The notes beneath the pieces are model-generated. The model did not search any database, was not told the DNA's origin, and saw only the letters and a program-made list of their open reading frames with translations. 64,000 bases of DNA from Bugula neritina (taxonomy: Eukaryota > Animalia > Bryozoa). Each line of letters opens with the position of its first letter. Positions within the stretch are counted from its first letter, which is position 1. Of the stretch, positions 16,501-59,840 are shown piece by piece. Made by a program: the position numbers and the translations under genes. The stretch spans positions 14,600,633 through 14,664,632 of the forward strand of contig OZ037769.1 in NCBI GenBank assembly GCA_964035545.1, written 5' to 3'.

Positions 16501-16893
16501 AGTGCCGGTTAAAAGTTAATTATAATTGGAAATAAGGTGAAATATCAGTCAGAAATTAAAAAGTGTCAACTAAAAAGGTGTATTGTTATTTCTTTTTGGC
16601 TTAATGAAAAAGTTTTTTGAGGAAGAAGTACGAGAAACATCTAGGAGGGGTTCATATCCACCACTGGCGACTACCTGTTTATTGATGAAAAACTATCCAA
16701 TGATAGTACAGTATTATGGTCTTTTGCCTTATAATTGGCTTTGATTTTTTTATGTCTAATTACGAGATACTAAACAGATGCAAAGTATGTTGTGCATAGG
16801 CAGTTTTTTTATGTCTCTAAACAACATTCTAGGAAAATATATACTGCACAAACTTCACATCTGTAAGGTTTTTCTCCAGTGTGTATCCTCATA

Positions 16894-19800
16894 CACAGTT
16901 AGTTTAAGGTCATACTTTTCATTTTCTGGCTCTTTGCCAGGTGCTTTATGTTCTATATGAACAATGTTCCACTGATAGCTCGAACAGGTTGAATGTCACA
17001 GGAACAAAAAAAATATGAAAAGATAAAGAAACTTATGTTCTCCAATATACTTTTTTATTTTTTTCAAAAGCCAATTCATGTTTAAGTTATAGCTTGTTGA
17101 AAAACATATTCCCCCTTCCACATTCTTTTTAATTTATACGCTCCTGACTTGTTATTGCGTCTCAATATGCCTTGTATTTGAGTGCTTGTTAGTCTCGCTT
17201 CACTAACTTTGCCTATACTTCACAAGTGCCAGTGCTGCTGGCTCAAAAGCTAAATGTTATAAACTGTCAGCTAAAACCCAATCTTGTATTCCTAGGTTGG
17301 TTGGCCTAAATAAAACAATAGTCAAATCATGATTTCATGTTTTAAAAATTTACTCTATTCTAACCTGCTGCCTAGCTATAGTTCTATTTTTGATTTATAA
17401 TTACAGCATTTGTGATACATTTTTTTGGCAACCATGTGATTTATAAAATGCAGTAATGGTACTTACAATATTATATTATTACCATTATAATATATTATAT
17501 AGTATTATGTGTGTTTTTATTATACTGCATAATATCTATTTTATTATTGTTGTTGTGCAAACAAGTGCAATTAACCTAGTTTTCAAAATGTACCTCTAAA
17601 TTATCAGAATATCAGTTCAGATATTTTCATGCTTTGTTAGGTAAACCTAAAAAAAGAGGCTGTATTCCCAAAGTAAAGGGTGTTGAACTATGAACTATAT
17701 TAGATTAGCCACTCTGCTACCAAGTGCATCAGTAAAATATTATATGAATAGCTCTGATGCTTTGTCTCCAGTGGCTGGCTGCGATATGATAACTTGGCCA
17801 ACTTCCAAGAGTTTAAAATTGGTGCAATTATTCAAGAGGTTACATACTGCACAGAGCTAGCAGTGATAGTAACCTTGCTATTGGCAGTACTTATTACAAC
17901 TGCCAGCATATAAGCTGCATTGTAGAATGCAGTTGGGGTAGGCTAGTAAAACCAAATTCTGCTCTCTAATATACCTTAGACACAATGCAGCAACATAATT
18001 GTTCGTTTCAAATTACATTGCCACCCTTACACGAGCTGTGGGCTTCATAAAGATTCATATGATTAGAGATTTATGCTATAGGCTAGCTATGATGAAAATA
18101 ACACACCATTGTCAAAGTTAACTTCAAGTATGTTGTTTTCCAGAAACTCAGTAATGTCCATTTATCTCTCGCATACAAATACTTATGCAATAGCATACAG
18201 TTTAAGTTTTATTTTAGAGCACACCTGCAAACTCTACAATAAGAGCTTGCTTTAACAGTCTATTTCAGACCTGTTTTTGTAGCTAGTAATACGCAAGCTA
18301 CTTATTTTTAAACTTTTGGGTTATTTGTTCAAAACAATTAGCTTTGCTAGTAACCCGAGACTATCGCAACAGTTGACTGCTATCAACATGAATTGACAGC
18401 CTAATAATAGACGATGTAAATTTGGTACATTTAGTACCTTGTACCAACTCTAGAATACTCACCACTATAACTTATATAAACTTCTGCAAGTTCAAATGCA
18501 AAATGCATACTTTTAGAAAATAGCTGTGCAACTTTTATTACATGCATTATTTTATTTCATATCTTAAACTTATGAACCATGAGTTCATTTTTCAAAATGT
18601 TTAAATTAAGTGCTCAAAAAATGCAATTAAAATTTTTATTCTTGCACAAATACCCTGGTGCAGTTTGACCACAACCCCAGCTGTTTTGACAAACACATTT
18701 AATGGTTTTTTTTATTGACATAGTGGTGAATGAGCTGGTTGTTTTTGGCAGTTGGGTAGACTTGAAGCTTGGCAGCTTTTAAACAATTCTGATTGGCAGA
18801 ATTTTACACGATAAGTTGATGTTTGTATCTGATTGGCCTAATAATGCATTTGCATTTGAAAATGTAGAGTTTTATTTAAGCTATAATGGTGATATTTTAG
18901 AGTTGGCACACACCCCTTTTGGGTTGAGTTTTATAGTCTGTTCCTGCTGTAGTCATCTACAACAACAGTGTATAGGGAAATTATTAGTATTACGAAATCT
19001 GTTTTGGCTTACTTTGCTATGCCAGTATTCTGACTTAGTTTGTAATCAACTATGTTGGCAGTTAAAACTGAGGGTGATTTCATCAAAGGTGGACATTGCT
19101 GAGGCCTTAGAACATCAAATCAACCAGTGCTGTTACTTGGTTGTATTGTAAAGCAGTAGTGAGAGCATAGCACACTATCACAGTCACTGAGCTGCAATGA
19201 CAGTGGCTACACCAAACTCGTCAGTTCTATTATATTATCTTATGTAAGGCACGTCAAAACAATATAGACCCACATGCAAGGCACTACATGCTAATACTCA
19301 TTTTTATACAAAATTTCTACATTATCTATTGCTAATAGCTGTGCATTTAAATCCAATGCAGATGAATATGTGACAGAGTAAAAAGCTACTGTTTTACAAA
19401 TTTAAAATAAAATAATAGTGCGGGTACACAAGCAAATAATTTATAGTTAGCGTAGGCTAATGCATTTGTAATGTGCATGTTAAACAACTTTTTTATAATT
19501 TATTACATTAGACTATGAGAATGTATTTAGTAGTATGTATTGATTTAAAACTAAATCATGAAATGATTATCATTATTGCAACCTCTGTGCTTGGTAGACA
19601 GGATAGAGAGGGGTGGTGTGACTGCTGTAACTGTGCTACTGCTCTACATACTAACAGAGACTAGGCTAGTGTTTTGACGTGCCTTACATACTGTCATTGC
19701 AGCTCAGTGACTGTGATAGTGTGCTATGCTCTCACTACTGCTTTACAATACAACCAAGTAACAGCACTGGTTGATTTGATGTTCTAAGGCCTCAGCAATG

Positions 19801-21209
19801 TCTACCTTTGATGAAATCACCCTCAGTTTTAACTGCCAACATAGTTGATTATAACAAAACTAAGTCAGAATACTGGCATAGCAAAGTAAGCCAAAACAGA
19901 TTTCGTAATACTAATAATTTCCCTATACACTGTTGTTGTAGATGACTGCAGCAGGAACAGACTATAAAACTCAACCCAAAAGGGGTGTGTGCCAACTCTA
20001 AAATATCACCATTATAGCTTAAATAAAACTCTACATTTTCAAATGCAAATGCATTATTAGGCCAATCAGATACAAACATCAACTTATCGTGTAAAATTCT
20101 GCCAATCAGAATTGTTTAAAAGCTGCCAAGCTTCAAGTCTACCCAACTGCCAAAAACAACCAGCTCATTCACCACTATGTCAATAAAAAAACCATTAAAT
20201 GTGTTTGCCAAAACAGCTGGGGTTGTGGTCAAACTGCACCAGGGTATTTGTGCAAGAATAAAAATTTTAATTGCATTTTTTGAGCACTTAATTTAAACAT
20301 TTTGAAAAATGAACTCATGGTTCATAAATTTAAGATATGAAATAAAATAATGCATGTAATAAAAGTTGCACAGCTATTTTCTAAAAGTATGCATTTTGCA
20401 TTTGAACTTGCAGAAGTTTATATAAGTTATAGTGGTGAGTATTCTAGAGTTGGTACAAGGTACTAAATGTACCAAATTTACATCGTCTATTAGAGAAACT
20501 GAAAGTACACCTGCTGCGCTATAGACAGACATTTACTGACAAGACTGTAAAGTGAAGTGATTTAGCTGAAATTAACTTTGCCAAACAAACAAAGAATTAT
20601 GTTGTGCTGAGGCATTTTCAATATATTATTGTAACATAGTGAGATGATTCAGCTGAGTGCTAAAGTAAAACAGGGAGCATTATATTGGCAGAAATCCAAT
20701 AGATTGCCAATTTGTGCGAGAGGGTACTATATGTTATTGTGATAGCGCAGAGCGGCAAACTACTAGGAATGTTATAATTAGTCACAGGAGCGTAGTTAGA
20801 ACCACCATATGAAGAATTTAGAAAATTGCAGTGAAACTTGCAAAATGGTGTATGTTTTTACCAAATTGTGAAGAGCATAAACAGAATTTCAAAAAACAAA
20901 GAAAGTATATTAGAGAAAACATATCAAGGAATGTCAAGTTTAACATTTAAACTTTGTAAAATGAATCCCCTGTGCTACAGCAGTGGAACATGGAGGGTGT
21001 AAAATTTTACTTATTATGCAACAACTTTCTCAGAAAATTTTTTATTGAAAAATTAAAAAAGTATATGAAAGAGGAATGCAAGAGCTATCTTTTCATGTAA
21101 AATTTATTAATGTGAGACAAAAACTGTTCGAGCTATCTCCTGGAAACTGTTTATATATAACATAAAGCAGTGCCTGAATCTGGAAAGTAATGACCTTAAA
21201 CCAACTGTG
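16894..21209. mobile_element. Non-autonomous TIR DNA transposon with CACAG termini and TA target duplication (EnSpm/CACTA-like or Tc1/mariner-like)
   Basis: Left end TA|CACAGTTAGTTTAAGGTCAT, right end ATGACCTTAAACCAACTGTG|TA. Imperfect TIR of about 110 bp (gctttatgtt...gatagctcgaacag). The empty site is defined by the ZNF reading frame. Confidence 0.9.
18409..20488. mobile_element. Nested foldback-type DNA transposon with about 850-bp near-identical TIRs and AT target duplication (ISL2EU/PHIS-like)
   Basis: 18409-19261 is the reverse complement of 19670-20488, apart from one 36-bp indel and a few substitutions. Ends are AT|AGACGATG...CATCGTCT|AT. The spacer is about 410 bp with no recognisable transposase. 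Confidence 0.92.
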
Positions 21210-21779
21210 TATGAATAGATAAATTACTTCTCTGCGTATATGCTTTGTCACACTTTTCACATTTGTATAACTTTTCTGAGTTGTGTTTTTTTACGGGGAG
21301 AGTTAATTCATTCCTGTCTTTGAAAATGGTGTTACATATTTGAAATTCATAAAAGTTTTCTTCATGGTTTATGTTCATGTATTTAGGTAACTCCTGATAT
21401 TGTGAAACCTGTTTACAATGATTTCTGTATGCGTCATTTTCTGCTAGCTCCATGCATGTTCTAAAGTGTTCTTCACACTTTGCACACCTTTTGGGCTCCT
21501 TACTATTTTCTTTTGTGTCAAGGCCAAGCAACGAATAAATGAAGGCTTCCCCACACTCACTACACCTTTTAAGATGTTTATTACTGTGCATTGTAGGATA
21601 GTTATTTGAAACTGGCGTCTGTGAACAACCTTCTTCTTTTGTATCATCAGTTTCAACTTTAAACTCTAAAAGAAGAGATTCCAGATTCTCACCTTTCTTT
21701 CTATTCTCAGATGCTAAGTCTTGCTCTGGAATATTAATAATAAACATTTACAATCTGCTGAGATAAAATATAAAAGAGA

Positions 21780-21900
21780 GCAGCAGTGGTATATAGGGGT
21801 TAAAATGTTTGCTTTGTAAACACAAAGTTAAGGGTTTGAACCCAGACAAAAGCCATTAGTGATGTTAGGAAGAGCATCCAGTCATAATTGCTTTCATTTA
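21780..21900 (+). mobile_element. tRNA-derived SINE in the ZNF1 intron
   Basis: A-box TGGTATATAGGGG, B-box-like GGTTTGAACCC, core gtgatgttaggaagagcatccagtcataa. Paralogous copies at about 25702, 28752, 30592, 38550 (head deleted), 42233, 48036, 52339 and 59408. Confidence 0.7.
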
Positions 21901-23093
21901 AATAAGCTCTTAGCCCAATTCATTAAAAACTCTTTTCTATCAGGGATCTCTTACAGAGACAGTGACTATAAACTTGTGTGAGTTTAAAATATATATATTC
22001 TTCTATAGAAGTTGTGGTATGTATAGTAGTTCAAGCAATGCATGGGGAGATAAAGACAAAAATACATGCAAAACCCTGAATAAGAAGCAAACTGGGAAAT
22101 TTACTAAAACAAAATGCCTAAATAGAATTTTAAACTGAATCAAATTTTTTTTTAAAAGGCAATAGAAGACAACTCTTTACTCACCACTGATGGACATATC
22201 TTGGTATTTTAGTATTTCTACTCAATCCTGATAAAATAATAAAATACTCTAAATCATATCATGTCCAATAAACAAAAGTACTAAATTAAAAATGATAAAG
22301 CATTAGCAAAAATTGGAAATCTAAAAGCAGAAAATTATAGCTTAAAAAGCCATAGAGTTGGTACTATATATAGCAAAATGTAAAACACAAAATACAAAAA
22401 TTAAAGACTAGCTATTTGGTTGCTGAAAGCTTTGAGGATGAGAAAGTATTGGGGAAGCAGTAATTTATAGACATATCTTATAAATTATTACTTGAAATTT
22501 AATCCTAATGTTTGTGCAACTGGGCTGATATACATATTATATTATATATACCTATCTTACCATCACCAAGAACTTATAGATTAAATAGATATAATACATT
22601 ATTCAAAGTAGCAATTTGGGCCTTAATAAAGCATTTAAAAAACCTACATCGAAAAATAAAGGCAAACCTTTATATTATTTTTCATCTTATTTCAACACTT
22701 AAAAAATAATATTTAATATAACTTGACATTAAAAAAGATTTTTGATCAGTAGCAGATGTTTATGAAGCTTACCCTGTGAGTTCACCGCAAGCATCAACTA
22801 TGATCTCAAGATACTCTTGAAAATAAATAACTTTTAGTGCCTATTTAATATATCTTATAGTTTATTACAATATATTGGTATAGAATAAGTAAAATCTAGT
22901 TTTAAATCAATCATGATATTGAATTGCACTTGATTATAAAAATGTGAGAAAAACAAATTTATTATAAAGCAATCCAAAAGTATAGAACCTAATTTTGTAT
23001 ATAATTATATGTGTATGAGTTGTCAAATATATTTTTTTTATAATATATAATAAAAATTATCAAAAAAAATTGCATCAAACCATAAAATCGTGC

Positions 23094-23113
23094 AGGTCAA
23101 AAGTCAAAGGTCA
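23094..23113 (+). promoter_or_regulatory. Tandem nuclear-receptor DR1 elements
   Basis: AGGTCA-A-AAGTCA-A-AGGTCA, about 0.9 kb upstream of the ZNF1 start exon. Confidence 0.45.
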
Positions 23114-24850: not shown

Positions 24851-26128
24851 TTATTTTCTATAAGAGTGTACCTTCATGTGATTAGTTAGATTTTGTTTTG
24901 TGGTATAGGTCTTTCCACAACTTTCACATCTGTAAGGTTTCTCTCCACTGTGTATCCTCACATGAACATTTAGATGTCCTTTGTGGCTAAAATTCTGGCC
25001 GCATGTCTCACATCTGTATGGCTCTTCCCCAGTATGAGTTCTCATATGAACAGTTAGTTGTGCTTTTTGTCTAAAAGAATTGCCACAAACTTTACATCTG
25101 AATGGCTTTTCTCCAGTGTGTATTCTCGCATGAACAGATAAACTACTTCTCCGTGTATATGCTTTGTCACACTCTTCACATTTGTATGGCTTTTCCAAGG
25201 TGTGTTTCTTCACAGAGTTAGCTAGTTTGTCCCTGTTTTTGAAAATGGTGTTCCATGTTTGAAATTCATAAAAGTTTTCTCCATGGTTAATGTTCATGTA
25301 TTTAGCTAACTCCTGAGATTGTGAAACCTGTTTGCAATGATTTCTGTATGAGTCATTTTTTTCTAGCTCCATGCATATTCTAAAGCATTCTTCACACTTC
25401 GCACACCTTTTGGTCTCTCTACTATCTTCTTCTGTGTCAAGGCCACACAGCAAATAAACGAAGTCTTCCCCACATTCCCTACATCTTTTAATATGTTTAT
25501 TGTTGTGCATTGTAAGATAGTTTTTTGAAACTGGCGTCTGTGAACTTAACCTTCTTCTTTTGTGTCATCTGCTTCAACTTTAAACTCTAAAAGAGGAGAT
25601 TTCAGATTATCACCTCTCTCTCTATTCTCAGATGCAAAGTCTTGCTCTGGAATATTAATAGGAAACATTTGCAACTTGTTTATATAAAATATATAAAACG
25701 AAGCAGCAGTGATCTAGGGGCTAAAGAGTTTGCTTTGTGAAAACTAAGTCATGGCTTTTAACCCTGACAAAGACTATCGGTAATGTTAAGAAGAGCATCT
25801 GTGGTCATAATTGCTTTGATGCCTCATTTAAAAAGTCTTTAGCCCGTTCTAACAAAAAACCCTTTCCATGATGGGATTCCCACAGGGATAGCGACTATAA
25901 AATTATGTGAGTTTAAAATATATAGAAGTTGTATTTTATAATAGTTTAATAATACTTTAATTAGGCAATGCATGAGCAGAGCAGGAAAAATACATGCAAA
26001 AATCGTGAATCAGAAGCAAACTGTATAATTTACTAAAATAAAATGTCTTTATAGATTTCTAAAATGAAACAAATTGTTTTTTATAAAAAGCAACAGAAGA
26101 CAACTCTTTACTCACCACTGATGGACAT
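24851..26128 (-). pseudogene. ZNF2: four-finger C2H2 gene with a +2 insertion creating an early stop
   Basis: Mini-exon 26128-26116, main exon from 25646. An extra TT at 25546-25547 turns GGT TGT into GGT TAA. The downstream ORF 25510-24851 is still open (C4 module plus 4 fingers). Confidence 0.85.
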
Positions 26129-27898: not shown

Positions 27899-29173
<1,275 letters not shown>

Positions 29174-29407: not shown

Positions 29408-30919
29408 TTATCTAAAGTGTGTTTTCATGTGGTTAGTTAGATAGTATTTTCTGGTAAAAGTCTTGCTACAAGTTGCACATCTGTATGGCCTTTCTCCAGT
29501 GTGAGTTCTCATGTGAACAGATAAAATATTACTCTGTCGAAAATTCTTATTGCATACTTTGCACCTGTAAGGTTTTTCCCCACTATGTATCCTCATATGA
29601 GTGGTTAAATGTACCTTTTGTTTAAAAGTCTTGCTGCAACTGTCACACCTGTAAGGTTTTTCTCCACTATGAACTTTTATATGCCTTAATAGATCACTTC
29701 TTTGTGTGAAAGTCTTGTCACATAATTTGCAATTGTATGGCTTTTCTCTAGTATGACTTCTTATATAAACAATTAGATTTCCTTTTCCTATAAAAGTTTT
29801 ATCACAATTATCACATTTGTAAGGCCTTTCTCCAGTGTGCACTCTCATATGAACAATTAAAGCCCCTTTGCAGCTAAATGTCTGGCCACATGTTTCACAT
29901 CTGTATGGCTTCTCTTCACTGTGTGTCCTCATATATGAAGAGATAGAGTACTACTTTGTTGAAAAGTCTTATTGCATACTTTGCACCTGTAAGGTCTTTC
30001 TCCAGTGTGTATTCTCATATGAACAGATAAACTACTTCTCCGTGTATATGTTTTGTCACACTTTTCACATTTGTATGGCTTCTTAAAAGTGTGTTTTTGC
30101 AAGGGGTTTATAGTTAGTTCGTCCTTGTTTTCGAAAATGGTGTTCCATGTTTCAAATTCATAAAAGTTTTCTTCATGTTTTATGTTCATATATTCAGGTA
30201 ACTCTTGAGACTGTGAAACCTGTTTGCAATGATTTCTGTATGAGTCATTTTTTTCTAGCTCCATGCATGTTCTGAAGTGTTCTTCACACTTCACACACAT
30301 TTCAGGCTCTCTACTATCTTCTTTTGTGTCAAAGCCAAAAAACGAATAAATGAAGGCTTCCCCACACTCCCTACATATTTTAAAATGTTTATTGCTGTGC
30401 ATACTAGGATAGTCATTTGAAACTGATGTCTGTGAACAACCTTCTTCTTTTGTGTCATCAGCTTCAACTTTGAACTCTAAAAGAGGAGATTCCAGATTCT
30501 CACCTCTCTCTTTATAATTCTCAGATGCAAAGTCTTGCTCTGGAATAATAATAGTAAACATTTACAATTTACTGAGATAAAATATAAATGGAAGCAGCAG
30601 TGGTTTAGAGGTTAAAGCATTTGCTTTGTGAACACAAAATCATGGGTTCAAACCCATGATTTTAGAAAGAGCATCCAGTCTTGCTCTGAAATATTGTAAT
30701 ATCAAAAATGTACCTATATATGTGTTGCTTTATTAAAAACTCAAGGCCTATAAGTCTATATAGTAGTTCAAGAAAACCCCATTACAGGAAGATGAAGACA
30801 AATGCTTGCAAAATTTGTGAGCTAGAAAAACAAAATATTCTAATAGATTTATAAATAGAATCAAATTGTTTTTATAAAAAGCATCAGAAGACAACTTTTT
30901 ACTCACCACTGATAGACAT
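29408..30919 (-). pseudogene. ZNF4: eight-finger C2H2 gene with a +2 frameshift in finger 2
   Basis: Mini-exon 30919-30907, main exon from 30539. CATATATG at about 29930-29937 splits the ORF into 30561-29929 and 29932-29408, which overlap at ATGA. Confidence 0.88.
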
Positions 30920-35031: not shown

Positions 35032-38884
<3,853 letters not shown>

Positions 38885-40970: not shown

Positions 40971-42650
40971 TTATTCTCTAGAGTGTAATTTCATGTGGTT
41001 AGTTAGATTTTGGTTTGTGATAAAAGTCTTGCTACAAGTTGCACATCTGTATGGCTTTTCTCCAGTATGAGTTCTCATATGCACAATTAGATGTCCTTTG
41101 TGGCTAAAATTCTTCCCACATGTTTCACATCTGTAAGGTTTTTCTCCACTGTGTATCCTCATATGAACCAATAGATTGCTACTTTGTATGAAAGTTTTGT
41201 CACATAATTTGCATTTGTGAGGCTTTTCTCCAGTGTGAGTTTTTATGTGAAGAGTTAGGTGGGCTTTTCGCTTAAAAGTATTGCTACAAAATTCACATCT
41301 GTAAGGCTTTGCTCCACTGTGTATCCTCATATGAACAATTAAAACTCCTTTTCGTTTAAAATTCTTCCCACATGTCTCACATCTGTAAGGTTTTTCTTCA
41401 CTGTGTATTCTCATATGAAGAGATAAACTACTTCTCCGTGTATATGCTTTGTCACACTTTTCACATTTGTGTGGTTTTTCTTTAGTATGAGTTCTCATAT
41501 GGACAGTTAGATCTCCTTTTCGTATAAAAGTTTTATCACAACTTTCACATTTGTAAGGTCTTTCTCCAGTGTGTATTCTCATATGAACAACTAGAGCTCC
41601 TTTGTGGGTAAAAGACTGCCCACATGTTTCACACCTGCACAGGTTATCTCCACTATGTATTCTCATATGAATAGATAAATTACTTTTTCGTGTATATGCT
41701 TTGTCACACTTTTCACATTTGTATGACTTTTCCAAGGTATGTTTTATCACAGGGTGAGTTGGTTTATTCCTGTTTTTCAAAAAGGTGTTCCATGTTTCAA
41801 ATTCATAAAAGTTTTTTTCATGGTTTATGTTCATATATTTAGGTAACTGTTGAGATTCTAAAACCTGTTTGCAATGATTTCTGTATGAGTCATTCTTTTC
41901 TAGCACCATGCATATTCTTAAGTGTTCTTCACACTTCACACACCTTATGAGCTCTTTACTATCTCCTTGTGCGTCAAGGCCAAATGACAAATAAAAGAAG
42001 TTGTCCCCACATTCACTGCATCTTTTAAGAGGTTTATTGCTGTGCGATGTAGCATAGTTATATGAAACTGGCGTCTGTGAACAACCTTCTTCTTTTGTGG
42101 CATCTGCTTCAACTTTAAACTTTAAAAGAGGAAATTCCAGATTCTCATCTCTGTCATTATTCTCAAATGCTAAGTCTTGCTCTAGATCTTCAATGTTAAA
42201 CATTCAAAATTCACTTAGATAAAATATATAATTGAGCAGCTGTGGTCTAGGAGTTAAGTTGTAGTGTTTGCTTTGTGAAAACGAATTTATGGCTTTGAAC
42301 CCTGACAAAGGCCATTGGTGATGTTAGAAAAAGCATCTAGTCATAATTGCTATTACTGCAGGTCTTATTTAAAATATTTTTTAGCCCATTCTAACAAAGA
42401 GCTTTTTCATCATGTAGGATTCTCACAAGGATATCGACTATTAAATTTCTTGAGTTTAAAATATAGAAGTTGAGCTATATATAGTAGTTCAAGCAATGCA
42501 TGAGGAGATAAAAACAAATACATGAAAAATTGGTAAGTAAAATACAAACTGTGAAAGTTACTAAAACAACATATCTAAATAGATTTGTCCTTATAACTTG
42601 TTTTATAAACAATAATGGAATGCAATTCTTTACTCACCACTGATAGACAT
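40971..42650 (-). CDS. ZNF6: intact C2H2 zinc-finger protein, 9 fingers (join 42650-42638, 42181-40971)
   Basis: Open frame MSISEQDLAFENND...FKVE...CSEC-x22-CVKC...9 fingers...HSRE*, with canonical GT/AG splice sites. Confidence 0.9.
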
Positions 42651-42799: not shown

Positions 42800-45700
42800 A
42801 GCTATAAAATTATTACTAGCAAAATTTAAAACTCTTGATGAAAATATAAAGACTTGCTATTTGGTTGCTGAAAGCTTTGAGGACTATAGTAGCAGGGCAA
42901 AGATTACAGCTAGTTATAAATCTATTAAAAACATTTGATAATATATAAACACTGAATGCTCATTCATGAAAGCTTCTTTTGATCTTTTTATTTACCATAT
43001 TATAGAAAATTGTAATTAAACAACAGATATTTTTTTATTTCATGTTTCCAGTGTAAGTTGCATTACTTGTTTTTTTTTCCAGATATAAAATAGTTAAATA
43101 TTAACAAACCAATTCTCTTCAAAATTTTTCCCCGATATGGTCAGTATCAGATTTAAAAAATATTTCTAATGCAAACATAACAATTAGCATACCATAGTTT
43201 GCAGTTTTGATTTTTGCTGTTTCAAGTCTACAATGTCTAAAATACAAGCATTATTTTAAATCAGTATAAACCACATCATTATTCAAATTAAGTTAGATCT
43301 GATGGAAAGATGCAAAAACTGCCAATTGTTTAATAAAATTAAACTTTATTTGAAAACATAAATGATCTCTATAAAACCCAAGACTCATCAACTGGCTGCA
43401 GTAATGATTGCCTCAATGCATGCATATATACTACAACATGATATATAGCTTTTTAGACACAACTTAAAGTTTTCAGTTATTTTCAGCTTCAATTACTTAA
43501 ATTTTGATGGCTATTCAGGATTATTAAAATTATTTTGTATAATATATTATGATTATTTAGCATACTTTAAGTATCTATTTATGCTGACTTTGTTTTTAAT
43601 TATTGTCAGCATTTAAGATATTTAAATTATCTTCTCACAAAATAATGACATCACTATTAAATATTTGAAGCCACTGTTTAGTGACAAACCTTTCTGCAAG
43701 ATAAGAAAACAGACATGATTTTTGCAGACAGTTAACTCAGAGTTGGTTCACTTTCTGCTGAGTTTGTTTCTATACTCGTAAGTAAATTCAATGTATGTAG
43801 ATGGTATAATATAATATGTTTTAACATATAATATACTTAATTTCCACTTGTATACTGTATTTGGTCGTACATCAATCCTAAATGAATGAAATGAATTTTC
43901 AGCTTAATTAGTTTTTAATTTATGTTTAAGTATTCTGATTAGATAAAATTATCTTTCCATCAGCATGTTTAAAATTAGTTTTGCATTGAAATTTACTCGT
44001 AATTTTACTGCAAGAAAATATTTGAATTCTTTACCTATACAGATTTTATAGCAAGTGTTGCTGTAGCATCTTTCTCCATGCAAGAGAATTGATGTCACAT
44101 CACCCAGAGATTCATTTTGATTTACATGGTTGAATGATACAGTATGAGTTGTGTCTCCTTTCTCGTGCTTCGATCTCAGTCATGAGTGTAGCTTCTGGTA
44201 AGTGAGGGTTTTGTACAAACTTCAAGTAAACAAGATGACTGTAATTATTACTTTAGTTTAATATTATAATAGTCTGCTTGTATATGCAACATGGTCTAGT
44301 ACAACTATATATATATATATATACTATATACTATTGCTTCTGCTGACCAATTTTACTGTAGTTTTCAACTTTTACTTGTTCGTTAGTATTTAAAATACCT
44401 ATAAATAATACTAATGCATTTATTCCTGACATATTCAATTACTTTAGAGGAAAAATTATGGTAAACTAATTTACTCTATTTGCCTCAACTACTTGCTATA
44501 AGTGAAACATTCTTCTGAATGCTAACTCAACAAAAAATATAATTTTTTTTTAATCTAACTTTTTTACTTACATGTAATGAAATCAGTATGATTATCATTA
44601 TTTACCATGCAAATGTTTTTTAAGCTTCACATCTATAAGATCATGTTAAAAGAAACTATAACAACCAGTTTGTTGAATTGAAAGTTTTCCTTAAGCCTTG
44701 GAACTATATCGAAAAATACTTTTAAACATATAATAATGCTAATATATTATAGGTTTAGGTTTAGGAAAAAAACACTGCAATCCTTGAACAATTAACAAGT
44801 AAGCCATAATTCAGTCGATGAAATATAATTATAAATATAGAAACCATAAAATTCAATAGCAAATATTTTACTAAACTAAAACATTCAACTATGGAAACAA
44901 TGACTACACAAAAATTAATGACATCATAATTATATGAACTAAATTAAATTTGAAATCATTTATCGAAATAAAGGTTTGTAATTTTTTCCCTGCCTTAGCA
45001 AAAACTAGCATTTGATGTTTAATATTGATTTTAATGACTGAATATTTTACAGGCAGCCATTATAGTCAGAAAAACTACTAATGTTGATATCAAATTATCT
45101 TTGAAGAATGTCAACAGAAACTATCCAAAATCTGATTGACCAAAACAGCATCATGGGGTTTCCTGTTTATAAACTATAAGTGACATCTTGTAAGACATGC
45201 AGTAACAGTTTCAATCCTGTTACAGCTGCTATAAAGACAATTAATTAATTACAGGAACACCAAGTTTGTGTAATGAAACAAACTAAAAGAGTTATATGAC
45301 ATTAAATAACAAGTGTATATTCTGCGGTGGTGAATGCCAGTAGAAATGGTCTGTCTAAAAGTAGCCAAGATCTTATTGGCTGAGAAAAGTTTATTGCTAA
45401 AGAGAGTATCTTATAGACTGCATACCCTAAGACAGTGACAGGTAAACCAGCTGCAGCAGCTATCCCAACTTTCTTCGTAGTGCTGAAATTTTGCATGTTA
45501 TTAACTAAACTGAGCTGTGCAAACATGCGCAAATGCATGAGTTTTATCAAACAAGTAATACAAAGAATTTCTACATATCATATAGGTATGCTATAATTAC
45601 CTCTCTTTTGCTTGAATCAATGAATTGAATCAGTAGGTAATCTTTATTGGTCATTTTTTCAATTAATTATAATAACACTATTACTGTTATTTTCATAATC

Positions 45701-46938: not shown

Positions 46939-48445
46939 TTATTCTCTAGAGTGTACTTTCATGTGAAAAGTTAAACTTTGTCTTGACGTATAAGTCTTGC
47001 TACAAGTTTGACATCTGTATGGCTTTTCTCCAGTATGAGTTCTCATATGAACAATTAGATGTCCTTTCCATTTAAAATTCTTCTCACATTTTTCACAGCT
47101 GTAAGGTTTCTCTCCAGTGTGCATTCTTGTATGAATAGATAAATGGGCAATTTGTCTAAAAGTTTTATCACATACGTTGCATCTGTAAGGCTTTTCTCCA
47201 GTGTGCATTCTCATATGAACAACTAAAGCTACTTTGTAGCTAAAAGTTTTTCCACATGTTGCACACCTGTAAGGCTTTTCTCCACTGTGTACTCTCATAT
47301 GAATGGTGAGATCTCCTTTTCGTATAAAATTTTTATCACAACTTTCACACTTGTATGGTCTTTCCCCAGTGTGTATTCTCATATAAACATTTAGAGCTCC
47401 TTTGTGGGTAAAAGTTTGACCACATGTCTCACACCTGCAAAGGTTCTCTCCACTGTGTATTCTCATATGAACAGATAAACTACTTTTCTGTGTATATGAT
47501 TTGTCACACTTTTCACATTTGTATGGCTTTTCCAAATTGTATTTTTTCACCGGATTAAAAGTTAGTTCCTCCCTGTTTTTGAAAATAGTATGTGATGTTT
47601 TGAATTCATAAAAGTCTTCTTCATAGCTAATGCTCATATATTGAGGTAACTCCTGAGATTGTGAAACCTGTTTGCAATAATTTCTGTATGAGTCATTCTT
47701 TTCTAGCTCCGTGCATGTTTTAAAGTGTTCTTCACACTTCGCACACCTTTCAGGCTCTCTACTATCTTCTTCTGTGTCAAGGCCAAACAACAAATAAATG
47801 AAGGCTTCCCCACACTCACTACATCTTTTAAGATGTTCATTGCTGTGCATTGTAGGATAGTTATTTGAAACTGACGTTTGTGAACAACCTTCTTCTTTTG
47901 TGTCATCTGCTTCAACTTTAACCTCTAAAAAAGGAGATTCCAAATTCTCACCTCTCTCTCTATTTTTAGATGCTGATTCTTGCTCTGCAATATTAATATC
48001 AGAACTTTACAATTTAGTTTAATAAAACATGAAAGGGAGCAGCGGTGGTCTAGGGGTTAAAGCGTTTGCATTGTGAACACGAAGTCATGACTTCGAACCT
48101 TGCCGAAGGCCATTGGTGATGTTAGGAGGAGCATCTAGTCATAATTGCTCCTGTGACTCATTTAAAACAGTTCTTAGCACGTTCTAACAAAAACTATTTC
48201 TATCATGGAATCTCGTGAGAGAGCCACTATATAAACTTGTGTGAATTTAAAATATAAAAGTTGTTGTATATACAGCAGTTCAAGCAATACATGGGGAGAT
48301 AAAGAAAAATACATGCAAAAATTGTAAACTAGAAGCAACCTGTAAAACCTGCTAAAACAAAATATTCTTATAGATTTTTAAATTGAATAAAATTGTTTTT
48401 TAAAAAGCAATAGAAGGCAACTCTTTACTCACCACTGATAGACAT
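46939..48445 (-). CDS. ZNF7: intact C2H2 zinc-finger protein, 7 fingers (join 48445-48433, 47984-46939)
   Basis: Open frame [29 protein letters not shown]... Finger 2 has His replaced by Tyr. Confidence 0.88.
48036..48156 (+). mobile_element. Best-preserved copy of the intronic tRNA-derived SINE
   Basis: A-box TGGTCTAGGGG, anticodon-arm-like gcattgtgaac, B-box cttcgaacc, then ggccattggtgatgttaggaggagcatctagtcataa. Confidence 0.75.
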
Positions 48446-50481: not shown

Positions 50482-52751
50482 TTATTCTCTAGAGTGTAAT
50501 TTCATGTGCTTAGTTAGATTTTGTTTTGTGATAAAAGTCTTGCTACAAGTTGCACATCTGTATGGCTTTTCTCCAGTATGAGTTCTCATATGAACAACTA
50601 GTTGTCCTTTTCGACTAAAGGTTTTGCCACAAACTTCACAACTGTATGGTTTCTCTTCACTGTGTGTCCTTATATGAAGAGGTAGAGTACTACTTTGTTG
50701 AAAAGTTTTATCGCATACTTTGCACCTGTATGGTCTTTCTCTAGTGTGAGTTCTCATATGAACAATTAGATGTCCTTTGTGGCTAAAATTCTTCCCACAT
50801 GTTTCACATCTGTAAGGTTTTTCTTCACTGTGTATCCTTATATGAACCAATAGATTGCTACTTTGTATGAAAGTTTTGTCACATATTTTGCATTTGCTGT
50901 GAGGTTTTTCTCCAGTGTGAGTTTTTATGTGAAGAGTTAGGTGAGCTTTTCGTTTAAAAGTATTGCTACAAAATTCACATCTGTAAGGTTTTTCTCCGCT
51001 GTGTATCCTTATATGAACCAATAGAGTGCTACTTTGTATGAAAGTTTTGTCACATATTTTGCATTTGTGAGGTTTTTCTCCAGTGTGAGTTTTTATGTGA
51101 AGAGTTAGGTGAGCTTTTCGTTCAAAATTCTTCCCACATGTTTCACATCTGTAAGGTTTTTCTTCACTGTGTATCCTTATATGAACCAATAGATTGCTAC
51201 TTTGTATGAAAGTTTTGTCACATATTTTGCATTTGCTGTGAGGTTTTTCTCCAGTGTGAGTTTTTATGTGAAGAGTTAGGTGAGCTTTTCGTTTAAAAGT
51301 ATTGCTACAAAATTCACATCTGTAAGGTTTTTCTCCGCTGTGTATCTTTATATGAACCAATAGAGTGCTACTTTGTATGAAAGTTTTGTCACATATTTTG
51401 CATTTGTGAGGTTTTTCTCCAGTGTGAGTTTTTATGTGAAGAGTTAGGTGAGCTTTTCGTTCAAAATTCTTCCCACATGTCTCACATCTGTAAGGTTTTT
51501 TTTCACTGTGTATTCTCATATGAAGAGATAAACTACTTCTCCATGTATATGCTTTGTCACACTTTTCACATTTGTGTGGTTTTTCTCTAGTATGAGTTCT
51601 CATATGGACAGTTAGATCTCCTTTTCGTATAAAAGTTTTATCACAACTTTCACATTTGTAAGGTCTTTCTCCAGTGTGTATTCTCATATGAACAACTAGA
51701 GCTCCTTTGTGGGTAAAAGACTGCCCGCATGTTTCACACCTGCACAGGTTATCTCCACTATGTATTCTCATATGAATAGATAAATTACTTTTTCGTGTAT
51801 ATGCTTTGTCACACTTTTCACATTTGTATGACTTTTCCAAGGTATGTTTTATCACAGGGTGAGTTGGTTCATTCCTGTTTTTAAAAAAGGTGTTCCATGT
51901 TTCAAATTCATAAAAGTTTTCTTCATGGCTTATGTTCATATATTTAGGTAACTGTTGAGATTCTAAAACCTGTTTGCAATGATTTCTGTATGAGTCATTC
52001 TTTTCTAGCACCATGCATATTCTTAAGTGTTCTTCACACTTCACACACCTTATGAGCTCTTTACTATCTCCTTGTGCGTCAAGGCCAAACAACGGATAAA
52101 AGAAGTTGTCCCCACATTCACTGCATCTTTTAAGAGTTTTATTGCCGGGCATTGTAGCATAATTATTTGAAACTGGCGTCTGTGAACAACCTTCTTCTTT
52201 TGTGTCATCTGCTTCAACTTTAAACTCTAAAAGAGGAAATTCCAGATTCTCATCTCTGTCATTATTCTCAAATGCTAAGTCTTGCTCTAGATCTTCAATG
52301 TTAAACATTCAAAATTCACTTAGATAAAATATATAATTGAGCAGCTGTGGTCTAGGAGTTAAGTTGTAGTGTTTGCTTTGTGAAAACGAATTTATGGCTT
52401 TGAACCCTGACAAAAGGCCATTGGTGATGTTAGAAAGAGCATCTAGTCATAATTGCTATTGTGTCTCATTTAAAAAATTTCTTAGCCCATTCTAACAAAG
52501 AGCTTTTTCATCATGTAGGATTCTCACAAGGATAGCGACTATTAAATTTCTTGAGTCTAAAATATAGAAGTTGAGCTATATATAGTAGTTCAAGCAATGC
52601 ATGAGGAGATAAAAACAAATACATGAAAAATTGGTAAGTAAAATACAAACTGTGAAAGTTACTAAAACAACATATCTAAATAGATTTGTCCTTATAACTT
52701 GTTTTATAAACGATAATGGAATGCAATTCTTTACTCACCACTGATAGACAT
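50482..52751 (-). CDS. ZNF8: intact C2H2 zinc-finger protein, 16 fingers (join 52751-52739, 52286-50482)
   Basis: Open ORF; sister of ZNF6 with an expanded finger array. Confidence 0.92.
50785..51462. repeat. Intragenic 339-bp tandem duplication (4 fingers)
   Basis: 50785-51123 and 51124-51462 are nearly identical, and both carry the unusual TGEKPHSKC linker. Confidence 0.9.
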
Positions 52752-52899: not shown

Positions 52900-55800
52900 A
52901 AGCTATAAAATTGGTACTAGCAAAATTTAAAACTCATGATGAAAATATAAAGACTTGCTATTTGGTTGCTGAAAGCTTTGAGGATGAGATTAAGCAGGGC
53001 AAGGATTATTATAGCTAGTTATAGATCTATTAAAAACATATAATGATATATAAACAATGAATGCTCATTCACAAAAGCTTTTTTGATCTTTTTATTTAAC
53101 ATATTATAGAAAATTGTAATGAAACAACAGATATTTTTGTATTTCATGTTTCCAGTGTAGGTTGCATTAATTGTTTTTTTTTCCAGATATAAAATAGTTA
53201 ACTATTAACAGACCAATTCTCTTCAAAATTTCTTCGTGATATAGTCAGTATCAAATTTAAAAAATATTTCTAATGCAAACATAACAATTAGCATGCCATA
53301 GTTTGCAGTTTTAATTTTTGCTGTTTCAGGTCTATAATGTCTAGAATACAAGCATTATTTTAAATCAGTATAAACCACATCATTATTCAAATTAAGTTAG
53401 ATCTGATGGAAAGATGCAAAAACTGCCAATATTTAATAAAATTAAACTTCATTTGAAAACATAAACGATCTCTATAAAACCCAAGACTCATCAATTGGCT
53501 GCAGTAATGATTGCCTCAATGCATGCATATATACCACAACATGATATATAGCTTTTTAGACACAACTTAAAGTTTTCAGTTATTTTCAGCTTCAACATAA
53601 ATTTTGATGGCTATTCATGATTATTAAAATTATTTTGTATAATATATTATGATTATTTAGCATACTTTAAGTATCTATTTATGCTGACATTGTTTTTAAT
53701 TATTGTCAGCATTTGAGTTATTTAAAAAATCTTCTCACAAAATAATGACATCACTATTAAATATTTGAAGCCACTGTTTAGTCACAAATCTTTCTGCAAG
53801 ATAAGAAAACAGGCATGATTTTTGCAGACAGTTAACTCAGAGTTGGTTCACTTTCTGCTGAGTTTGTTTCTATAATCGTAAGTAAATTCAATGTATGTAG
53901 ATGGTATAATATAATATGTTTTAACATATAATATACTTAATTTCCACTTGTATACTGTATTTGGTCGTACATCAATCCTAAATGAATGAAATGAATTTTC
54001 AGCTTAATTAGTTTTTAATTTATGTTTAAGTATTCTGATTAGATAAAGTTATCTTTCCATCAGCATGTTTAAAATTAGTTTTGCATTGAAATTTACTCGT
54101 AATTTTACTGCAAGAAAATATTTGAATTCTTTACCTATACAGATTTTATAGCAAGTGTTGCTGTAGCATCTTTCTCGATGCAAGAGAATTGATGTCACAT
54201 CACCCAGAGATTCATTTTGATTTACATGGTTGAATGACTAGACTATGAATTGTGTCTCTTTTTTTGTACTTCTCAGTCATGAGTGTAGCTTCTGGTAAGT
54301 GATGGTTTTGTACAAACTTCATGTAAACAAGATAACTGTAATTATTACTTTAGTTTAATATTATAATAGTCCGCTTGTATATGCAACATGGTCTAGACTC
54401 TAGTACAACTATATATATACTATTGCTTCTGCTGACCAATTTTACTGTAGTTTTCAACTTTTACTTGTTCGTTAGTATTTAAAATACCTATAAATAATAC
54501 TAATGCATTTACTTCTGACATATTCAATTACTTTAGAGGAAAAATTATGGTAAACTAATTTACTCTATTTGCCTCAACTACTTGCTATAAGTGAAACATT
54601 CTTCTGAATGCTAACTCAACAGAAAATATAATTTCTTTTTAATTTAACTTTTTTACTTACATGTAATGAAATCAGTATGATTATCATTATTTACCATGCA
54701 AATGTTTTTTAAGCTTCACATCTATAAGATCATGTTAAAAGAAACTATAACAACCAGTTTGTTGAATTGAAAGTTTTCCTTAAGCTTTGGAACTATATCG
54801 AAAAATACTTTTAAACATATAATAATGCTAATATAGTATAGGTTTAGGTTTAGGAAGAAAACACTGCAATCTTTGAACAATTAACAATTAAGCCATAATT
54901 CAGTCGATTAAATATAATTATAAATATAGAAACCATAAAATTCAATAGCAAATTTACTAAACTAAAACATTCAACTATGGAAACAATGACTACACAAAAA
55001 TTAATGACATCATAATTATATGAACTAAATTTAATTTGAAATGATTTATCGAAATAAAGGTTTGTAATTTTTTCCCTGCCTTACCAAAAAACTAGCATTT
55101 GATGTTTAATATTGATTTTAATGACTGAATATTTTACAGGCAGCCATTATAGTCAGAAAAACTACTAATGTTGATATCAAATTATCTTTAAAGAATGTCA
55201 ACAGAAACTATCCAAAATCTGATTGACCAAAACAGCATCATGGGGTTTCCTGTTTATAAACCATAAGGGACATCTTGTAAGACACGAAGTAACAATTTCA
55301 ATCCTGTTACAGCTACTATAAAAACACTTCATTACAGGAACACCAAGTTTGTGTAATGAAACAAACTAACAGAGTTACATGACATTAAATAACAAGTGTA
55401 TATTCTGCGGTGGTGAATGCCAGTAGAAATGGTCTGTCTTAAAGTATAGCCAAGATCTTATTGGCTATATAAGAAAAATTTATTGCTAAACAGAATTTCT
55501 TATAGACTGCATACCCTAAGACAGTGACAGTTAAACCAGCTGCAGCAGCTCTTCCAACTTTCTTCATAGTGCTGAGATTTTACATGTTACTAACTAAACT
55601 GAGCTGAGGCAAACATGTGCAAATGCATCCTTTCTATATCAAATATGTAATACAAAGAATTTCTACATATCATAGGTATGCTGTAATTATACCTCTTTTT
55701 TTGCTTGAATTAATGAAATGAATCAGTAGTTATGATCGTTATTGGCTAATTTTTCACCTTCTAATAAAACTATTCTTTTTTATGATCTACTAAAGTGACT

Positions 55801-56540: not shown

Positions 56541-56748
56541 TTCAATTTTTTTTGTTATTTCAAAAAGGGTCATTGCAAATGAAATGCGCAGAATTTATAT
56601 TTTGAAAACTGAAAAGTAGTAAAAAATCAATAACTATAATATAATATGCAGTTAATTTCTATTTTTAAGCAACTTTTACTATTATGAAATGATTATATAC
56701 ATAAACCTATATAATAAACACTATCAGAAAAAAATGCATAAAAAAATA

Positions 56749-56777
56749 AGGTCAGGTAGGTCAAAAGTCAAAGGTCA
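56749..56777 (+). promoter_or_regulatory. Four nuclear-receptor half-sites (DR3, DR1, DR1)
   Basis: AGGTCA-GGT-AGGTCA-A-AAGTCA-A-AGGTCA in a spacer paralogous to the 23094 and 26633 sites. Confidence 0.45.
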
Positions 56778-58144
56778 AAAGAATGAAATTGCTACATGTA
56801 AATAATTTCCAAAAATGAATTTAACTGAAGCAAAGAGGCTTAGCTATAGTGTATATTAATATAATAATTTAGTTGAATGCTGTACTGTAAGCTTTTTATT
56901 ATAGGTAAATCATGAGTCTATATGTGCTTCGATGCCAGTCATTATTGCTTTACTATGCAACCACTTAAATAGCCCTTTTGTTAGATGGAAAGACAATTAC
57001 TCCATATATATACTGTCTATAAGCAGTAAATTTAGACTACTATATTATAGATTAATTATCAAATTTTGATTTTCAAAATTACTTTATCCGTTGCTCTGGA
57101 TATTTTTATCAGGGTTAGCTTAAATAACAATTAGCTAATAAACAAGACTTTCAATATTAGCTTTTTTATAACCTACTCCACAGAGGTTTAAAATGTTTTT
57201 TGTCCCTTAAATTTTACCATTATAATAATATTTTGTTCTACATGTTTAGACATGCCCTTCAACATTGAATCTGCTTTTTTAATGTTTCTTCAAAGGCTTT
57301 CTAATGCACCTCCCCCATGTGCACTTTACTATAGTGCCTCTATACACTTCTATTGAACTTTTTTGACATATTAAGGTAAATACTTTCTGTTAAATCATTC
57401 ATAAGAATTTAAAAACTATAACCATGAAGGCTTTTGTTATTAAAATTGGAGACATTATGTAATGCTATTTTTGCGTTATTATGTCACTTTATAGTACAAC
57501 TATAATACGTAACATTTTTGCACAACGTTATATACATTAAATGCATTAAGACATAAAAACAATAATTATGTGCAATTAATTTATTAAATATAAGAATGAT
57601 AAAAAATATACAATTACTAATAATGACATTTAAGATGTCAGATGAATAACTATCAACTGTCTGATTCAGTATATTTATAATTCATTTCTAAAAATAGTTT
57701 TCCATACTTTAAATAATGGTCTTAAAACAAAAGTCTAAATGTTAAGATCAGTTTACGTTAAAGGTCTAAAAGTTATTCTACATAGATTAAACTACTCAGT
57801 TTGTCTCACTAAATGGTTGTTGAAGCAGATATAATTTTGCTGAATGTTTTTAATAATACTTCATGTTTTATTGAGATTTCCACAATATGCAATTTTACAT
57901 AGCTAAATTTGAATTGGGTCCTAGAGGGTTTACAAGTTTACATTTGCATTTTTCATGCTGCGCTTTTATACAACAGTCTGGCCACATATTTCACATTATT
58001 TTCTCATAGAGTGTACTTTCATGTAGTTAGTTAGAATTTGTTTTCTGGTAAAAGTCGTAATAAAAGTTGCACAACTGTATGGCCTTTCTACAGTAGCCGT
58101 CGGTTTTGTCTAAAAGGTTGACGACATTTTTCACACCTGTAAGG

Positions 58145-59840
58145 TTACTCTCCACTGTGAATTCTTGTATGAATAGATAAATTGGCCATTTGTCTAAAAG
58201 TCTTGCCACAACTTTCACATCTATATGGCGTTTCTCCACTGTGTGTCCTCATGTGGATAGATAAAGTATTAGTTTGTCGAAAAGTCTTATCACATACTTT
58301 GCATTTGTAAGGCTTTTCCCCAGTGTGTATTCTCATATGAACAGTTAAAGCTCCTTTGTGTCTAAAAGTTTTTCCACATGTTTCACATCTGTAAGGCTTC
58401 TCTCCACTGTGTACTCTCATATGAGTGGCAAGAGCTCTTTTTTGTCTAAAAGTTTTACCACAACTTTCACATCCGTAAGGTTTTTCCCCAGTGTGAATTC
58501 TTATATGACTCAATAGAGTGCTTTTCTGTGTGAAAGTCTTATCACATAACTTGCATTTGTAAGGTTTTTCTCCACTGTGTATTCTCATATGAATAGATAA
58601 ACTACTTCTCTGTGTATATGCTTTGTCACACTTTTCACATTTGTATGGCTTTTCTCCAGTATGAGTTCTCATATGAACAATTAGATCTCCTTTTTGTATA
58701 AAGGTTTTACCACAACTTTCACATTTGTATGGTCTTTCCCCAGTATGTATTCTCATATGAATATTTAGAGTTCCTTTGTGGCTAAAAGTCTTGCCACATG
58801 TTTCACATCTGTAAGGTTTCTCTCCACCGTGTATTCTCATATAAATAGACAAACTACTTCTCTGTGTATATGCTTTGTCACACTTTTCACATTTGTATGA
58901 CTTTTCCAAATTGTGTTTTTTCATGGAGTTAGTTGGTGAGTCCCTGTTTTTGAAGATTGTGTTCCATATTTGAAATTCATAAAAGTTTTCTTCATGGTCA
59001 ATGTTCATATATTCAAGTAATTCCTGAGATTGTGAACCCTGTTTGCAATGATTTCTGTATGAGTCGTTTTTTTCTAGCTCCATGAGTGTTCTAACGTATT
59101 CTTCACACTTTGCACATCTTTTGGGCTCTCTACTATCGCCTTGTGTGTCAAGGCCAAACAAAGAATAAAATAAGTTGTCCCCACATTCGTTACATCTTTG
59201 AAGATGTTGATTGCTGTGCATTGTAGGATAGTTATTTGAAACTGGCGTCTGTAAACAACCTTCTTCTTTTGTGTCATCTGCTTCAACTTTAAACTCTAAA
59301 AGAGGAGATTCTAGATTCTCACCTCTCTCTCTATTCTCAGATGCTAAGTCTTGCTCTGGAATATTAATAGGAAACATTTACACTTTGCTGAGATAAAATA
59401 TATAATTGAGCAGCTGTGGTCTAGGGGTTGAAATGTTTGCTTTGTAAAAACGAATTCATGACTTTGAACCCTGACAAAGGCCATTGGTGATGCTAGGAAA
59501 AGCATCTTATAGTCACAATTGCTCTTGTGTCTCATGCAATTAAAAAAAGTTCTTAGCCCGTTCTAACAAAGAACCTTTTCAACATACAGGATTCTCAAAA
59601 GGATAGCAACTATCAACTTTCTTGAGTTTAAATATAAATGTTTTGGTATATATATATATATATATATAGTAGTGCAAGCAATGCATGGCGAAAGCAGGAG
59701 AAATACATGCAAAAATGGTGAATTAGAAACAAACTGTAAATTTACTAAAATAAAATGTCTTAAGAGATTTCTAAATTGAATCAAATTGTTTTATAAAAGG
59801 CAATATAGAAAGCAATTCTTTACTCACCACTGATAGACAT
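58145..59840 (-). CDS. ZNF9: C2H2 zinc-finger protein, 9 fingers, C-terminally truncated by a nonsense change (join 59840-59828, 59355-58145)
   Basis: Linker GEK has become GE*. Decayed fingers 10-11 continue to about 57997. Finger 1 has His replaced by Tyr. Confidence 0.85.

Follow-up and report, generated by a model that had tools for sequence, protein, structure and literature searches.

What is the shared N-terminal region of a clustered zinc-finger (ZNF) gene family in the bryozoan Bugula neritina: a domain of independent origin, or a product of the finger array that follows it? The question arises in a window of 64,000 nucleotides of assembly GCA_964035545.1 (contig OZ037769.1, here C5; C5:14600633-14664632; genome 216 Mb, ~30% GC), which holds nine C2H2 zinc-finger paralogs at 16.8-59.8 kb, all on the minus strand. 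Lineage-private ZNF families with N-terminal parts of their own (KRAB, ZAD, SCAN, FiNZ) recur in animals, and bryozoans have hardly been studied. A first-pass annotation of the window had proposed that the nine share an independent effector domain, a C4 zinc module with a SUMO site, comparable to the KRAB, ZAD and FiNZ systems. Our analysis points to a simpler answer, which we consider probable: the paralogs form a young, single-cluster, two-exon C2H2 family private to Bugula-type bryozoans, whose N-terminus consists of an acidic leader and four conserved decayed fingers. These genes form a lineage-private zinc-finger family of the ordinary sort, not a demonstrated new system of repressors.

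The nine gene models share one architecture. Exon 1 supplies 13 coding nt in each (ATGTCTATCAGTG, or ATGTCCATCAGTG or ATGTCTATTAGTG), with a conserved stretch upstream and the donor G/GTGAGT; its ATG lies at window positions 59840, 52751, 48445, 42650, 38884, 30919, 29173, 26128 and 22197. The single intron of each gene (367-472 nt) ends in an acceptor (C/T)AG directly before AGCAAGA, and the phase 1 join of exon 1 and exon 2 yields M-S-I-S-E-Q, then D (reading frame checked by script). The join served this frame check only, while database searches used the exon 2 sequence. In genes 5 and 7 no ATG precedes the leader in frame within exon 2, which agrees with translation starting in exon 1; the leader of gene 7 thus requires exon 1 to be translated. 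Splice signals and gene structure are conserved in all copies, and the models confirm for all nine paralogs the MSISEQ start and the CxxC motifs reported earlier, with the pattern (K/I)xC(S/R/N)(E/K)CG..F..GLD..C(A/V/E)(K/Q)C(E/K)E. Downstream, the family is poly-C2H2 (Krueppel-type), with tandem C-x2-C-x12-H-x3-H fingers and TGEKP-type linkers: among 80 fingers from 10 copies (gene 9 excluded from finger statistics) C, C, L, H and H are invariant and the linker is TGEKP, and Pfam on whole proteins returned zf-C2H2 (E 1.8e-56) and zf-H2C2_2 (E 2.2e-76). Intact fingers number 0-16 per paralog, the broken genes showing 0-1 in their first open frame; the upper end of 16 given earlier is correct (gene 8).

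Between start and fingers lies a region as unfamiliar as it had been judged from the letters. Pfam (E≤1) on the first 176 residues returned, apart from noise, only the point where the first true finger begins, with no known domain, and a profile search of 1.84 billion representatives found only family fragments and ZNF arrays. Most of the region nevertheless aligns with ordinary fingers. Using A1 numbering, which starts in exon 2 after the MSIS of exon 1 (the A1 profile comprises 17 uninterrupted N-termini), hhalign placed residues 44-152 on the family's own finger array over 107 columns with 93% probability, the linkers and CxxC in register across four consecutive canonical fingers; against a vertebrate ZNF the probability was 96% over positions 44-90. 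These pairings set TMHSNK..KRC against RIHSEEKPYRC, the CxxC of CSECGEAF and that of CAKCEEHF against the finger CxxC..F, YEFETCNTIFKNRDELT..KKHNLEK against a 27-residue finger segment, and one 19-residue stretch against 19 residues. Moreover, a PDB sequence search with the N-terminus returned only tandem C2H2 chains (ZNF568, ZBTB17, ZBTB7A), at positions 44-95 and 103-152, and the non-family representative matches on this part (P0009, P0011-13) are ZNF arrays. The layout in gene 9, in window coordinates, is as follows:

58145..59840, minus strand: gene 9, intact, 407 aa, 8 canonical fingers; exon 1 59828-59840, intron 59356-59827, exon 2 58145-59355
59225..59355, minus strand: acidic leader, A1 residues 1-43, preceded by MSIS of exon 1
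59282-59293, minus strand: psi-K-x-E site FKVE, then ADDTKEE
58898..59224, minus strand: four decayed C2H2 fingers, A1 residues 44-152, identified by hhalign, PDB sequence search and the representative matches P0009 and P0011-13
59183-59194, minus strand: CxxC knuckle of decayed finger 1
59105-59116, minus strand: CxxC knuckle of decayed finger 2

The course of decay differs by finger: i) finger 1 keeps both Cys, has G and G/E at the former His positions and carries a 3-residue deletion; ii) in finger 2 both Cys remain, N96 stands where the first His was and the second His went with a 5-residue deletion; iii) finger 3 retains only its first Cys (C103); iv) finger 4 retains F, L and the last His. 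The CxxC-to-CxxC spacing is 22 in the module versus 24 in the canonical array. These alignments identify residues 44-152, ~70% of the module, as four decayed C2H2 fingers, and CxxC-x22-CxxC as the two zinc knuckles that survive in decayed fingers 1 and 2. Since the module is finger-derived, it is not an independent domain of separate origin, and the effector domain of the first-pass annotation becomes for the most part the decayed front of the finger array. Identical indels in every copy place this decay before the family expanded; the His were lost by substitutions and 3-5-residue deletions. What is not finger-derived amounts to ~43 exon 2 residues plus MSIS, a leader of ~47 residues that is acidic (ENLES..EADD..EE), has a hydrophobic core (PLLEF) and is predicted to be disordered. 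Profile search of the 1.84 billion representatives found no homolog of the leader outside the family. An ESM Atlas look-alike search on the N-terminus gave a best score of 0.88 with low recognition and is uninformative.

Have the decayed fingers been kept by selection? C54, C57, C80 and C83 are invariant in the 17 uninterrupted genomic copies and in three cross-sample relatives, as had been claimed for the nine paralogs; three more Cys, passed over in the first-pass annotation, are also conserved, C33 and C103 without exception and C90 in 16 of 17. Because the copies are only 65-79% identical to each other, Cys invariance alone is weak, and it was tested against the column background: the seven Cys columns changed once in 56 closest-pair comparisons, the column average being 16.7% (permutation P = 0.004), and over 32 comparisons the four CxxC Cys showed no change (P = 0.015). 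C57 is missing from pseudogene L004 but from no uninterrupted copy. The N-terminus as a whole shows a ratio of nonsynonymous to synonymous substitution rates (dN/dS) of 0.5 (Nei-Gojobori, all pairs) and a ratio of the corresponding proportions of differences (pN/pS) of 0.55 on the eight closest pairs, and its synonymous divergence (0.14) matches intron divergence (0.12-0.17). By segment, in A1 codons, pN/pS is:

codons 1-33: 0.65-0.88
codons 34-53: 1.0-1.2
codons 54-92: 0.52-0.61
codons 93-125: 0.28-0.45
codons 126-160: 0.26-0.43

In the canonical fingers the framework stands at 0.33 and the DNA-contact positions (-1, 2, 3, 6) at 1.31. The decayed fingers are held by selection about as firmly as the finger framework, while the N-terminus overall is moderately constrained, and the comparison of N-terminus with fingers that had been suggested from the first reading shows the former not to be neutral (pN/pS ~0.5). 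The most conserved N-terminal stretch is a 22-residue segment, not the acidic site.

Several points weigh against our reading of the family: i) leader pS (codons 1-53) is 0.08-0.10, versus 0.13-0.23 downstream, at a leader pN/pS of 0.65-1.2; ii) the third positions of leader codons and of most Cys codons are identical as well; iii) between neighboring segments, such as the two halves of the N-terminus, pairwise distances show almost no correlation (Spearman 0.06), so the closest pairs are mosaic and the selection statistics approximate; iv) the AlphaFold2 models contain no confident fold and lend no support to a zinc site among the decayed fingers; v) the gene models are predictions from sequence. 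Leader conservation may come from exchange between paralogs or from constraint at the RNA level and not from peptide function; at the nucleotide level, we infer, it may mark a conversion tract or a purine-rich splicing signal of the GAAGAAG type. The mosaic pattern recurs in single pairs, L015 and L017 being 3.5% apart in the intron and 12.7% in codons 54-152, with L011 and L015 reversed, which indicates frequent recombination or gene conversion between the paralogs (L001-L018), with a putative breakpoint zone near codon 53.

Another explanation is that the N-terminus is functionless and conserved by the family's youth and by paralog exchange, with the decayed fingers an inert spacer and the canonical fingers acting alone. 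The 65-79% identity among copies, their mosaic histories, the third-position identity of the leader and most Cys codons, the low predicted local distance difference test (pLDDT) values, the low language-model recognition score and the death of half the genes would all agree with it. Nevertheless, paralog exchange hits synonymous and nonsynonymous sites alike and therefore cannot yield the pN/pS of 0.26-0.6 found over residues 54-152; pN is about half the intron divergence. Moreover, the Cys columns are conserved above the regional mean, and the loss of C57 is confined to a pseudogene. We consider a functionless N-terminus unlikely, and favor an N-terminus whose decayed fingers are under selection.

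Do the retained Cys form a folded zinc module? AlphaFold2 on residues 1-152 (17-sequence alignment) gave a mean pLDDT of 39, with the leader and residues 102-152 below 50, and on residues 44-112 (20 sequences) a pLDDT of 57, in a model where a beta hairpin surrounds the first CxxC, disorder follows and a helix begins at the second CxxC. The modeled segment is not a zinc ribbon, at a confidence too low to exclude one and with shallow alignments. Complex prediction of two N-termini with four Zn scored 0.00, which speaks neither for nor against binding. Thus, of the proposal that a C4 module had been built from two fingers that lost their His, the origin stands through the alignment of residues 44-152 on four fingers, while a folded C4 site finds no backing in the models (pLDDT 39 and 57).

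The other element of that proposal was the SUMO-type site of the leader. A sumoylation motif that depends on negatively charged amino acids (NDSM) consists of psi-K-x-E/D plus a downstream acidic stretch (PMC5727262). Of the 17 aligned copies, 15 carry (F/V)K(V/A/I)E followed by ADDTKEE in the leader, 12 of them as FKVE, and so do three of four cross-sample relatives, so that by its letters the leader matches the SUMO consensus and the NDSM definition, as claimed earlier for the acid-extended consensus. In composition-matched shuffles the bare psi-K-x-E arises in 31-44%, whereas the acid-extended form (at least 4 acidic residues in the next 7) arises in ~1%; the motif is lost in three copies (K>N in L018, deletion of VE in L017, K>E in P0002). 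An apparent relative of the leader, the AIMP2-like protein P0008 of Artemia franciscana (KAK2711373.1), was rejected as belonging to an unrelated animal and protein class, with a score inflated by triplication: it carries three tandem repeats ..NIESKLLLIKSEVDDIKAE.PSQVSTSN (..ESKLLLIKSEVDDIKAE..SQVSTSN) and aligned by hhalign at 72%, with 43% identity over 35 residues. Its likeness is probably chance or a convergent acidic psi-K-x-E motif.

Taken at its fullest, the effector-domain proposal holds that a C4 zinc module and a SUMO-modified FKVE recruit repression, silencing transposons in the manner of KRAB or ZAD proteins. The four invariant Cys, conserved beyond background, and the ~1% rate of the acid-extended motif with its NDSM fit (PMC5727262) are consistent with it; so are two CxxC knuckles spaced 22 apart, compatible with a site of the zinc-ribbon type and with a weak Pfam DZR match at residues 58-95 (E 0.049), as well as fast-changing finger contact residues and transposons that landed in the cluster. 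On the other hand: i) residues 44-152 are no separate domain but decayed fingers; ii) AlphaFold puts the second CxxC at a helix start, at low confidence and with no ribbon; iii) C33, C90 and C103 are also conserved, making other ligand sets possible; iv) the family numbers no more than 21 copies, of which about half are broken; v) three copies are without the acceptor Lys or Glu, and leader pN/pS is near 1; vi) the transposon insertions break cluster genes and are not evidence of transposon targeting. We regard this proposal as highly improbable. A version in which a His-less finger pair was re-used as a zinc module (C54/C57/C80/C83, with C33, C90 and C103 possibly a second site) and, with the SUMO-type leader, became an effector domain, private to bryozoans, of a small and quickly turning-over group of repressors is an equally long shot.

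Alternatively, the leader might be an acidic-hydrophobic activation peptide (LESPLLEF amid D/E) and the family one of activators. Acidic activation domains are generally acidic and hydrophobic in composition and disordered, and the leader is acidic, has the hydrophobic core PLLEF and is predicted to be disordered. Repressive FiNZ and KRAB are, however, reported to share this composition (PMC10547256), the leader has a pN/pS close to 1, and the activation motif was checked by hand only. An activator family thus appears to us quite doubtful, with odds as poor as those of the repressor domain.

How large is the family, and how far does it extend? Three genome-wide searches, with the 152-residue N-terminus, with its profile (E up to 10) and with promoter plus exon 1 DNA, returned the same 21 genomic places; the DNA search gave exactly 21 occurrences, one per copy, and the profile search (E≤10) no more distant N-terminal relatives in this genome. 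Twenty copies make up a single cluster of ~167 kb (C5:14.559-14.726 Mb), whose left part carries minus-strand genes and whose right part carries four on the plus strand. The remaining copy is a pseudogene on C4 that retains exon 1 and the intron, and hence arose by DNA duplication and not by retroposition. Among the clustered copies, 11 of 20 keep a full frame to the conserved last finger (..HMK.HS(R/G)E), the others being cut short or broken; of the nine genes in the window, four (6, 7, 8 and 9) are intact and five broken. A family of 21 copies, 20 of them in one cluster and about half pseudogenes, does not reach the scale of the KRAB, ZAD and FiNZ systems to which it had been likened.

Outside this genome, three relatives were found among 5.8 billion clustered proteins, and a HMMER profile pass over the 1.84 billion representatives added five family fragments and otherwise ordinary ZNF arrays. 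All outside relatives lie on Joint Genome Institute (JGI) metagenome contigs. The contig of P0003 (sample 3300003318), the only one looked up for a source tag, is tagged AY690838, the accession of the Bugula neritina mitochondrial genome (PMC2678162). Protein identity of the outside relatives to any copy in this genome is at most about 72%, with no one-to-one orthologs evident, so they stem from a related form and not from this assembly. The N-terminal profile on metagenome contigs gave 198 pattern matches and 0 relatives.

Among known systems, FiNZ-ZNF genes of cyprinid fish have a short (28-residue) Glu-rich N-terminal sequence, number ~700 in zebrafish and have been tied by experiment to transposon repression (PMC10547256). 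Both families are tandem clusters of lineage-private poly-C2H2 genes with a short Glu-rich N-terminus unlike known domains and fast-evolving contact residues; the bryozoan one differs in its 21 copies, its single cluster and a leader followed by four decayed fingers. No fish ZNF matched the leader in the profile search of 1.84 billion representatives, in which ZNF matches aligned only at positions 32-91. KRAB-ZNFs of tetrapods, in which degenerate fingers are common (PMC2865497), resemble this family in that their tandem clusters evolve by birth and death, fingers are duplicated and lost, otherwise intact proteins contain degenerate fingers without Cys or His, and pseudogenes are many. However, the effector part of the bryozoan proteins, if any, is the 47-residue leader (exon 1 and the start of exon 2), and the same four decayed fingers are fixed family-wide, whereas degenerate fingers are scattered among KRAB-ZNF members; the KRAB box (PF01352) gave no match at E≤1 in whole proteins or in the 176-residue N-terminus, and no KRAB protein stood among the profile matches. 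The third comparison is with ZAD (zf-AD, PF07776) of insects, which likewise belongs to clustered genes expanded within one lineage and places two CxxC pairs N-terminal to the C2H2 fingers. This C4 domain folds and dimerises, and roughly 50 residues separate its CxxC pairs; in the bryozoan family the spacing is 22, the segment aligns to two consecutive ordinary fingers and no confident fold is predicted. Pfam gave no zf-AD match at E≤1.

The same genome holds other poly-ZNF clusters (C8 at 4.6, 8.44-8.59 and 10.73-10.78 Mb; C1 at 26.74-26.78 Mb; C4, C6 and C3; 522 first-look candidates), which likewise consist of tandem C2H2 genes, many of them broken, with an acidic or disordered pre-finger region particular to each subfamily. 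By hhalign, their leaders have no profile similarity to the leader of this family. One C8 subfamily (C8:10.73-10.78 Mb and 4.62 Mb; L026, L028-L032) has a 97-residue leader with FK(I/M)ADDSK versus FKVEADDTK here, at a similar distance from the exon start; the corresponding DNA pattern occurs five times in the genome, always in the C8 subfamily, and profile comparison lent the likeness no homology support. If it were homologous, the conserved part would be ADD(T/S)K and not the SUMO Glu.

How might such proteins work and evolve? In the reading that we prefer, a family of ordinary finger proteins with a decayed front, intact members would bind DNA sequence-specifically through their canonical fingers, and the leader would be the likely effector or regulatory peptide, by analogy with how the FiNZ sequence is read in fish. 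The decayed fingers may persist as a structural or protein-contact spacer, perhaps holding zinc non-canonically. The family probably turns over as whole units duplicate, paralogs exchange sequence, fingers are gained or lost and genes often become pseudogenes. The cluster opens no long-standing question; it is a small and clean example of how an apparent new domain before a finger array can be born by decay of the array's first fingers and then kept by selection. As such, it advises caution in domain discovery in ZNF families, and would represent a modest domain birth if the retained Cys still bind zinc.

The remaining genes of the window, from right to left, are as follows:

50482..52751, minus strand: gene 8, intact, 605 aa, 16 canonical fingers; exon 2 starts at 52286
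46939..48445, minus strand: gene 7, intact, 352 aa, 6 canonical fingers; exon 2 starts at 47984
40971..42650, minus strand: gene 6, intact, 407 aa, 9 fingers; exon 2 starts at 42181
35032..38884, minus strand: gene 5, broken; a 2.44-kb element splits the finger array, the last fingers resuming at 35032-35250
29408..30919, minus strand: gene 4, broken by a frameshift and stop after ..STLSLHI at ~29929; the array goes on in another frame
27931..29173, minus strand: gene 3, broken; +TA at the His-Met CATATG of finger 1 leads to a stop at 28179, with three more fingers out of frame
24851..26128, minus strand: gene 2, broken; a 2-nt insertion after ..DDTKEEG leads to a stop at 25546, with the remainder of the N-terminus and four fingers in another frame
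16809..22197, minus strand: gene 1, broken within finger 1, at CATA/CACAGTTGG.. (~21203); a relic finger resumes at ~16947

In gene 8 a four-finger block has been recently amplified (50567-51701; 339-nt period, 3.4 copies, 87% matches), which accounts for part of its 16 fingers; one copy of the block has an extra codon (..KPHSKC..). Gene 1 is interrupted by an insertion of ~4.26 kb (window 16947-21203) with a TA duplication, CATA/CACAGTTGGTTTAAGGTCAT ... ATGACCTTAAACTAACTGTG/TATG, and matching inverted termini CACAGTT.GTTTAAGGTCAT. Because of the duplication and the termini, the insertion looks like a DNA transposon of the Tc1/mariner type. The segment 16809-16960, the left end of the feature as first read, is the relic finger of gene 1 severed by this transposon. 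Inside the insertion lies a foldback with nearly perfect inverted arms of ~800 nt (18405-19204 and 19690-20492).

In genes 3 and 4, CATATATG replaces the His-Met CATATG of intact paralogs (28179-28185 and 29929-29935); this may be a footprint left by excision or a change that paralog exchange made common to both. These +TA sites are of the same type as the target of the gene 1 transposon. The element in gene 5 (2.44 kb, 35169-37605) has inverted arms of ~590 nt (485 + 93 nt, 98% complementary), with no clear TA duplication visible at its ends. Between the ZNF genes, a small open frame with a hydrophobic segment (..MKKVGIAAVAGLTVAVLGYAVYKIFSLAINFSQP..) is repeated on the minus strand at 33713-33952, 45302-45550 and 55439-55567; it may be a small gene or merely part of the duplicated unit.

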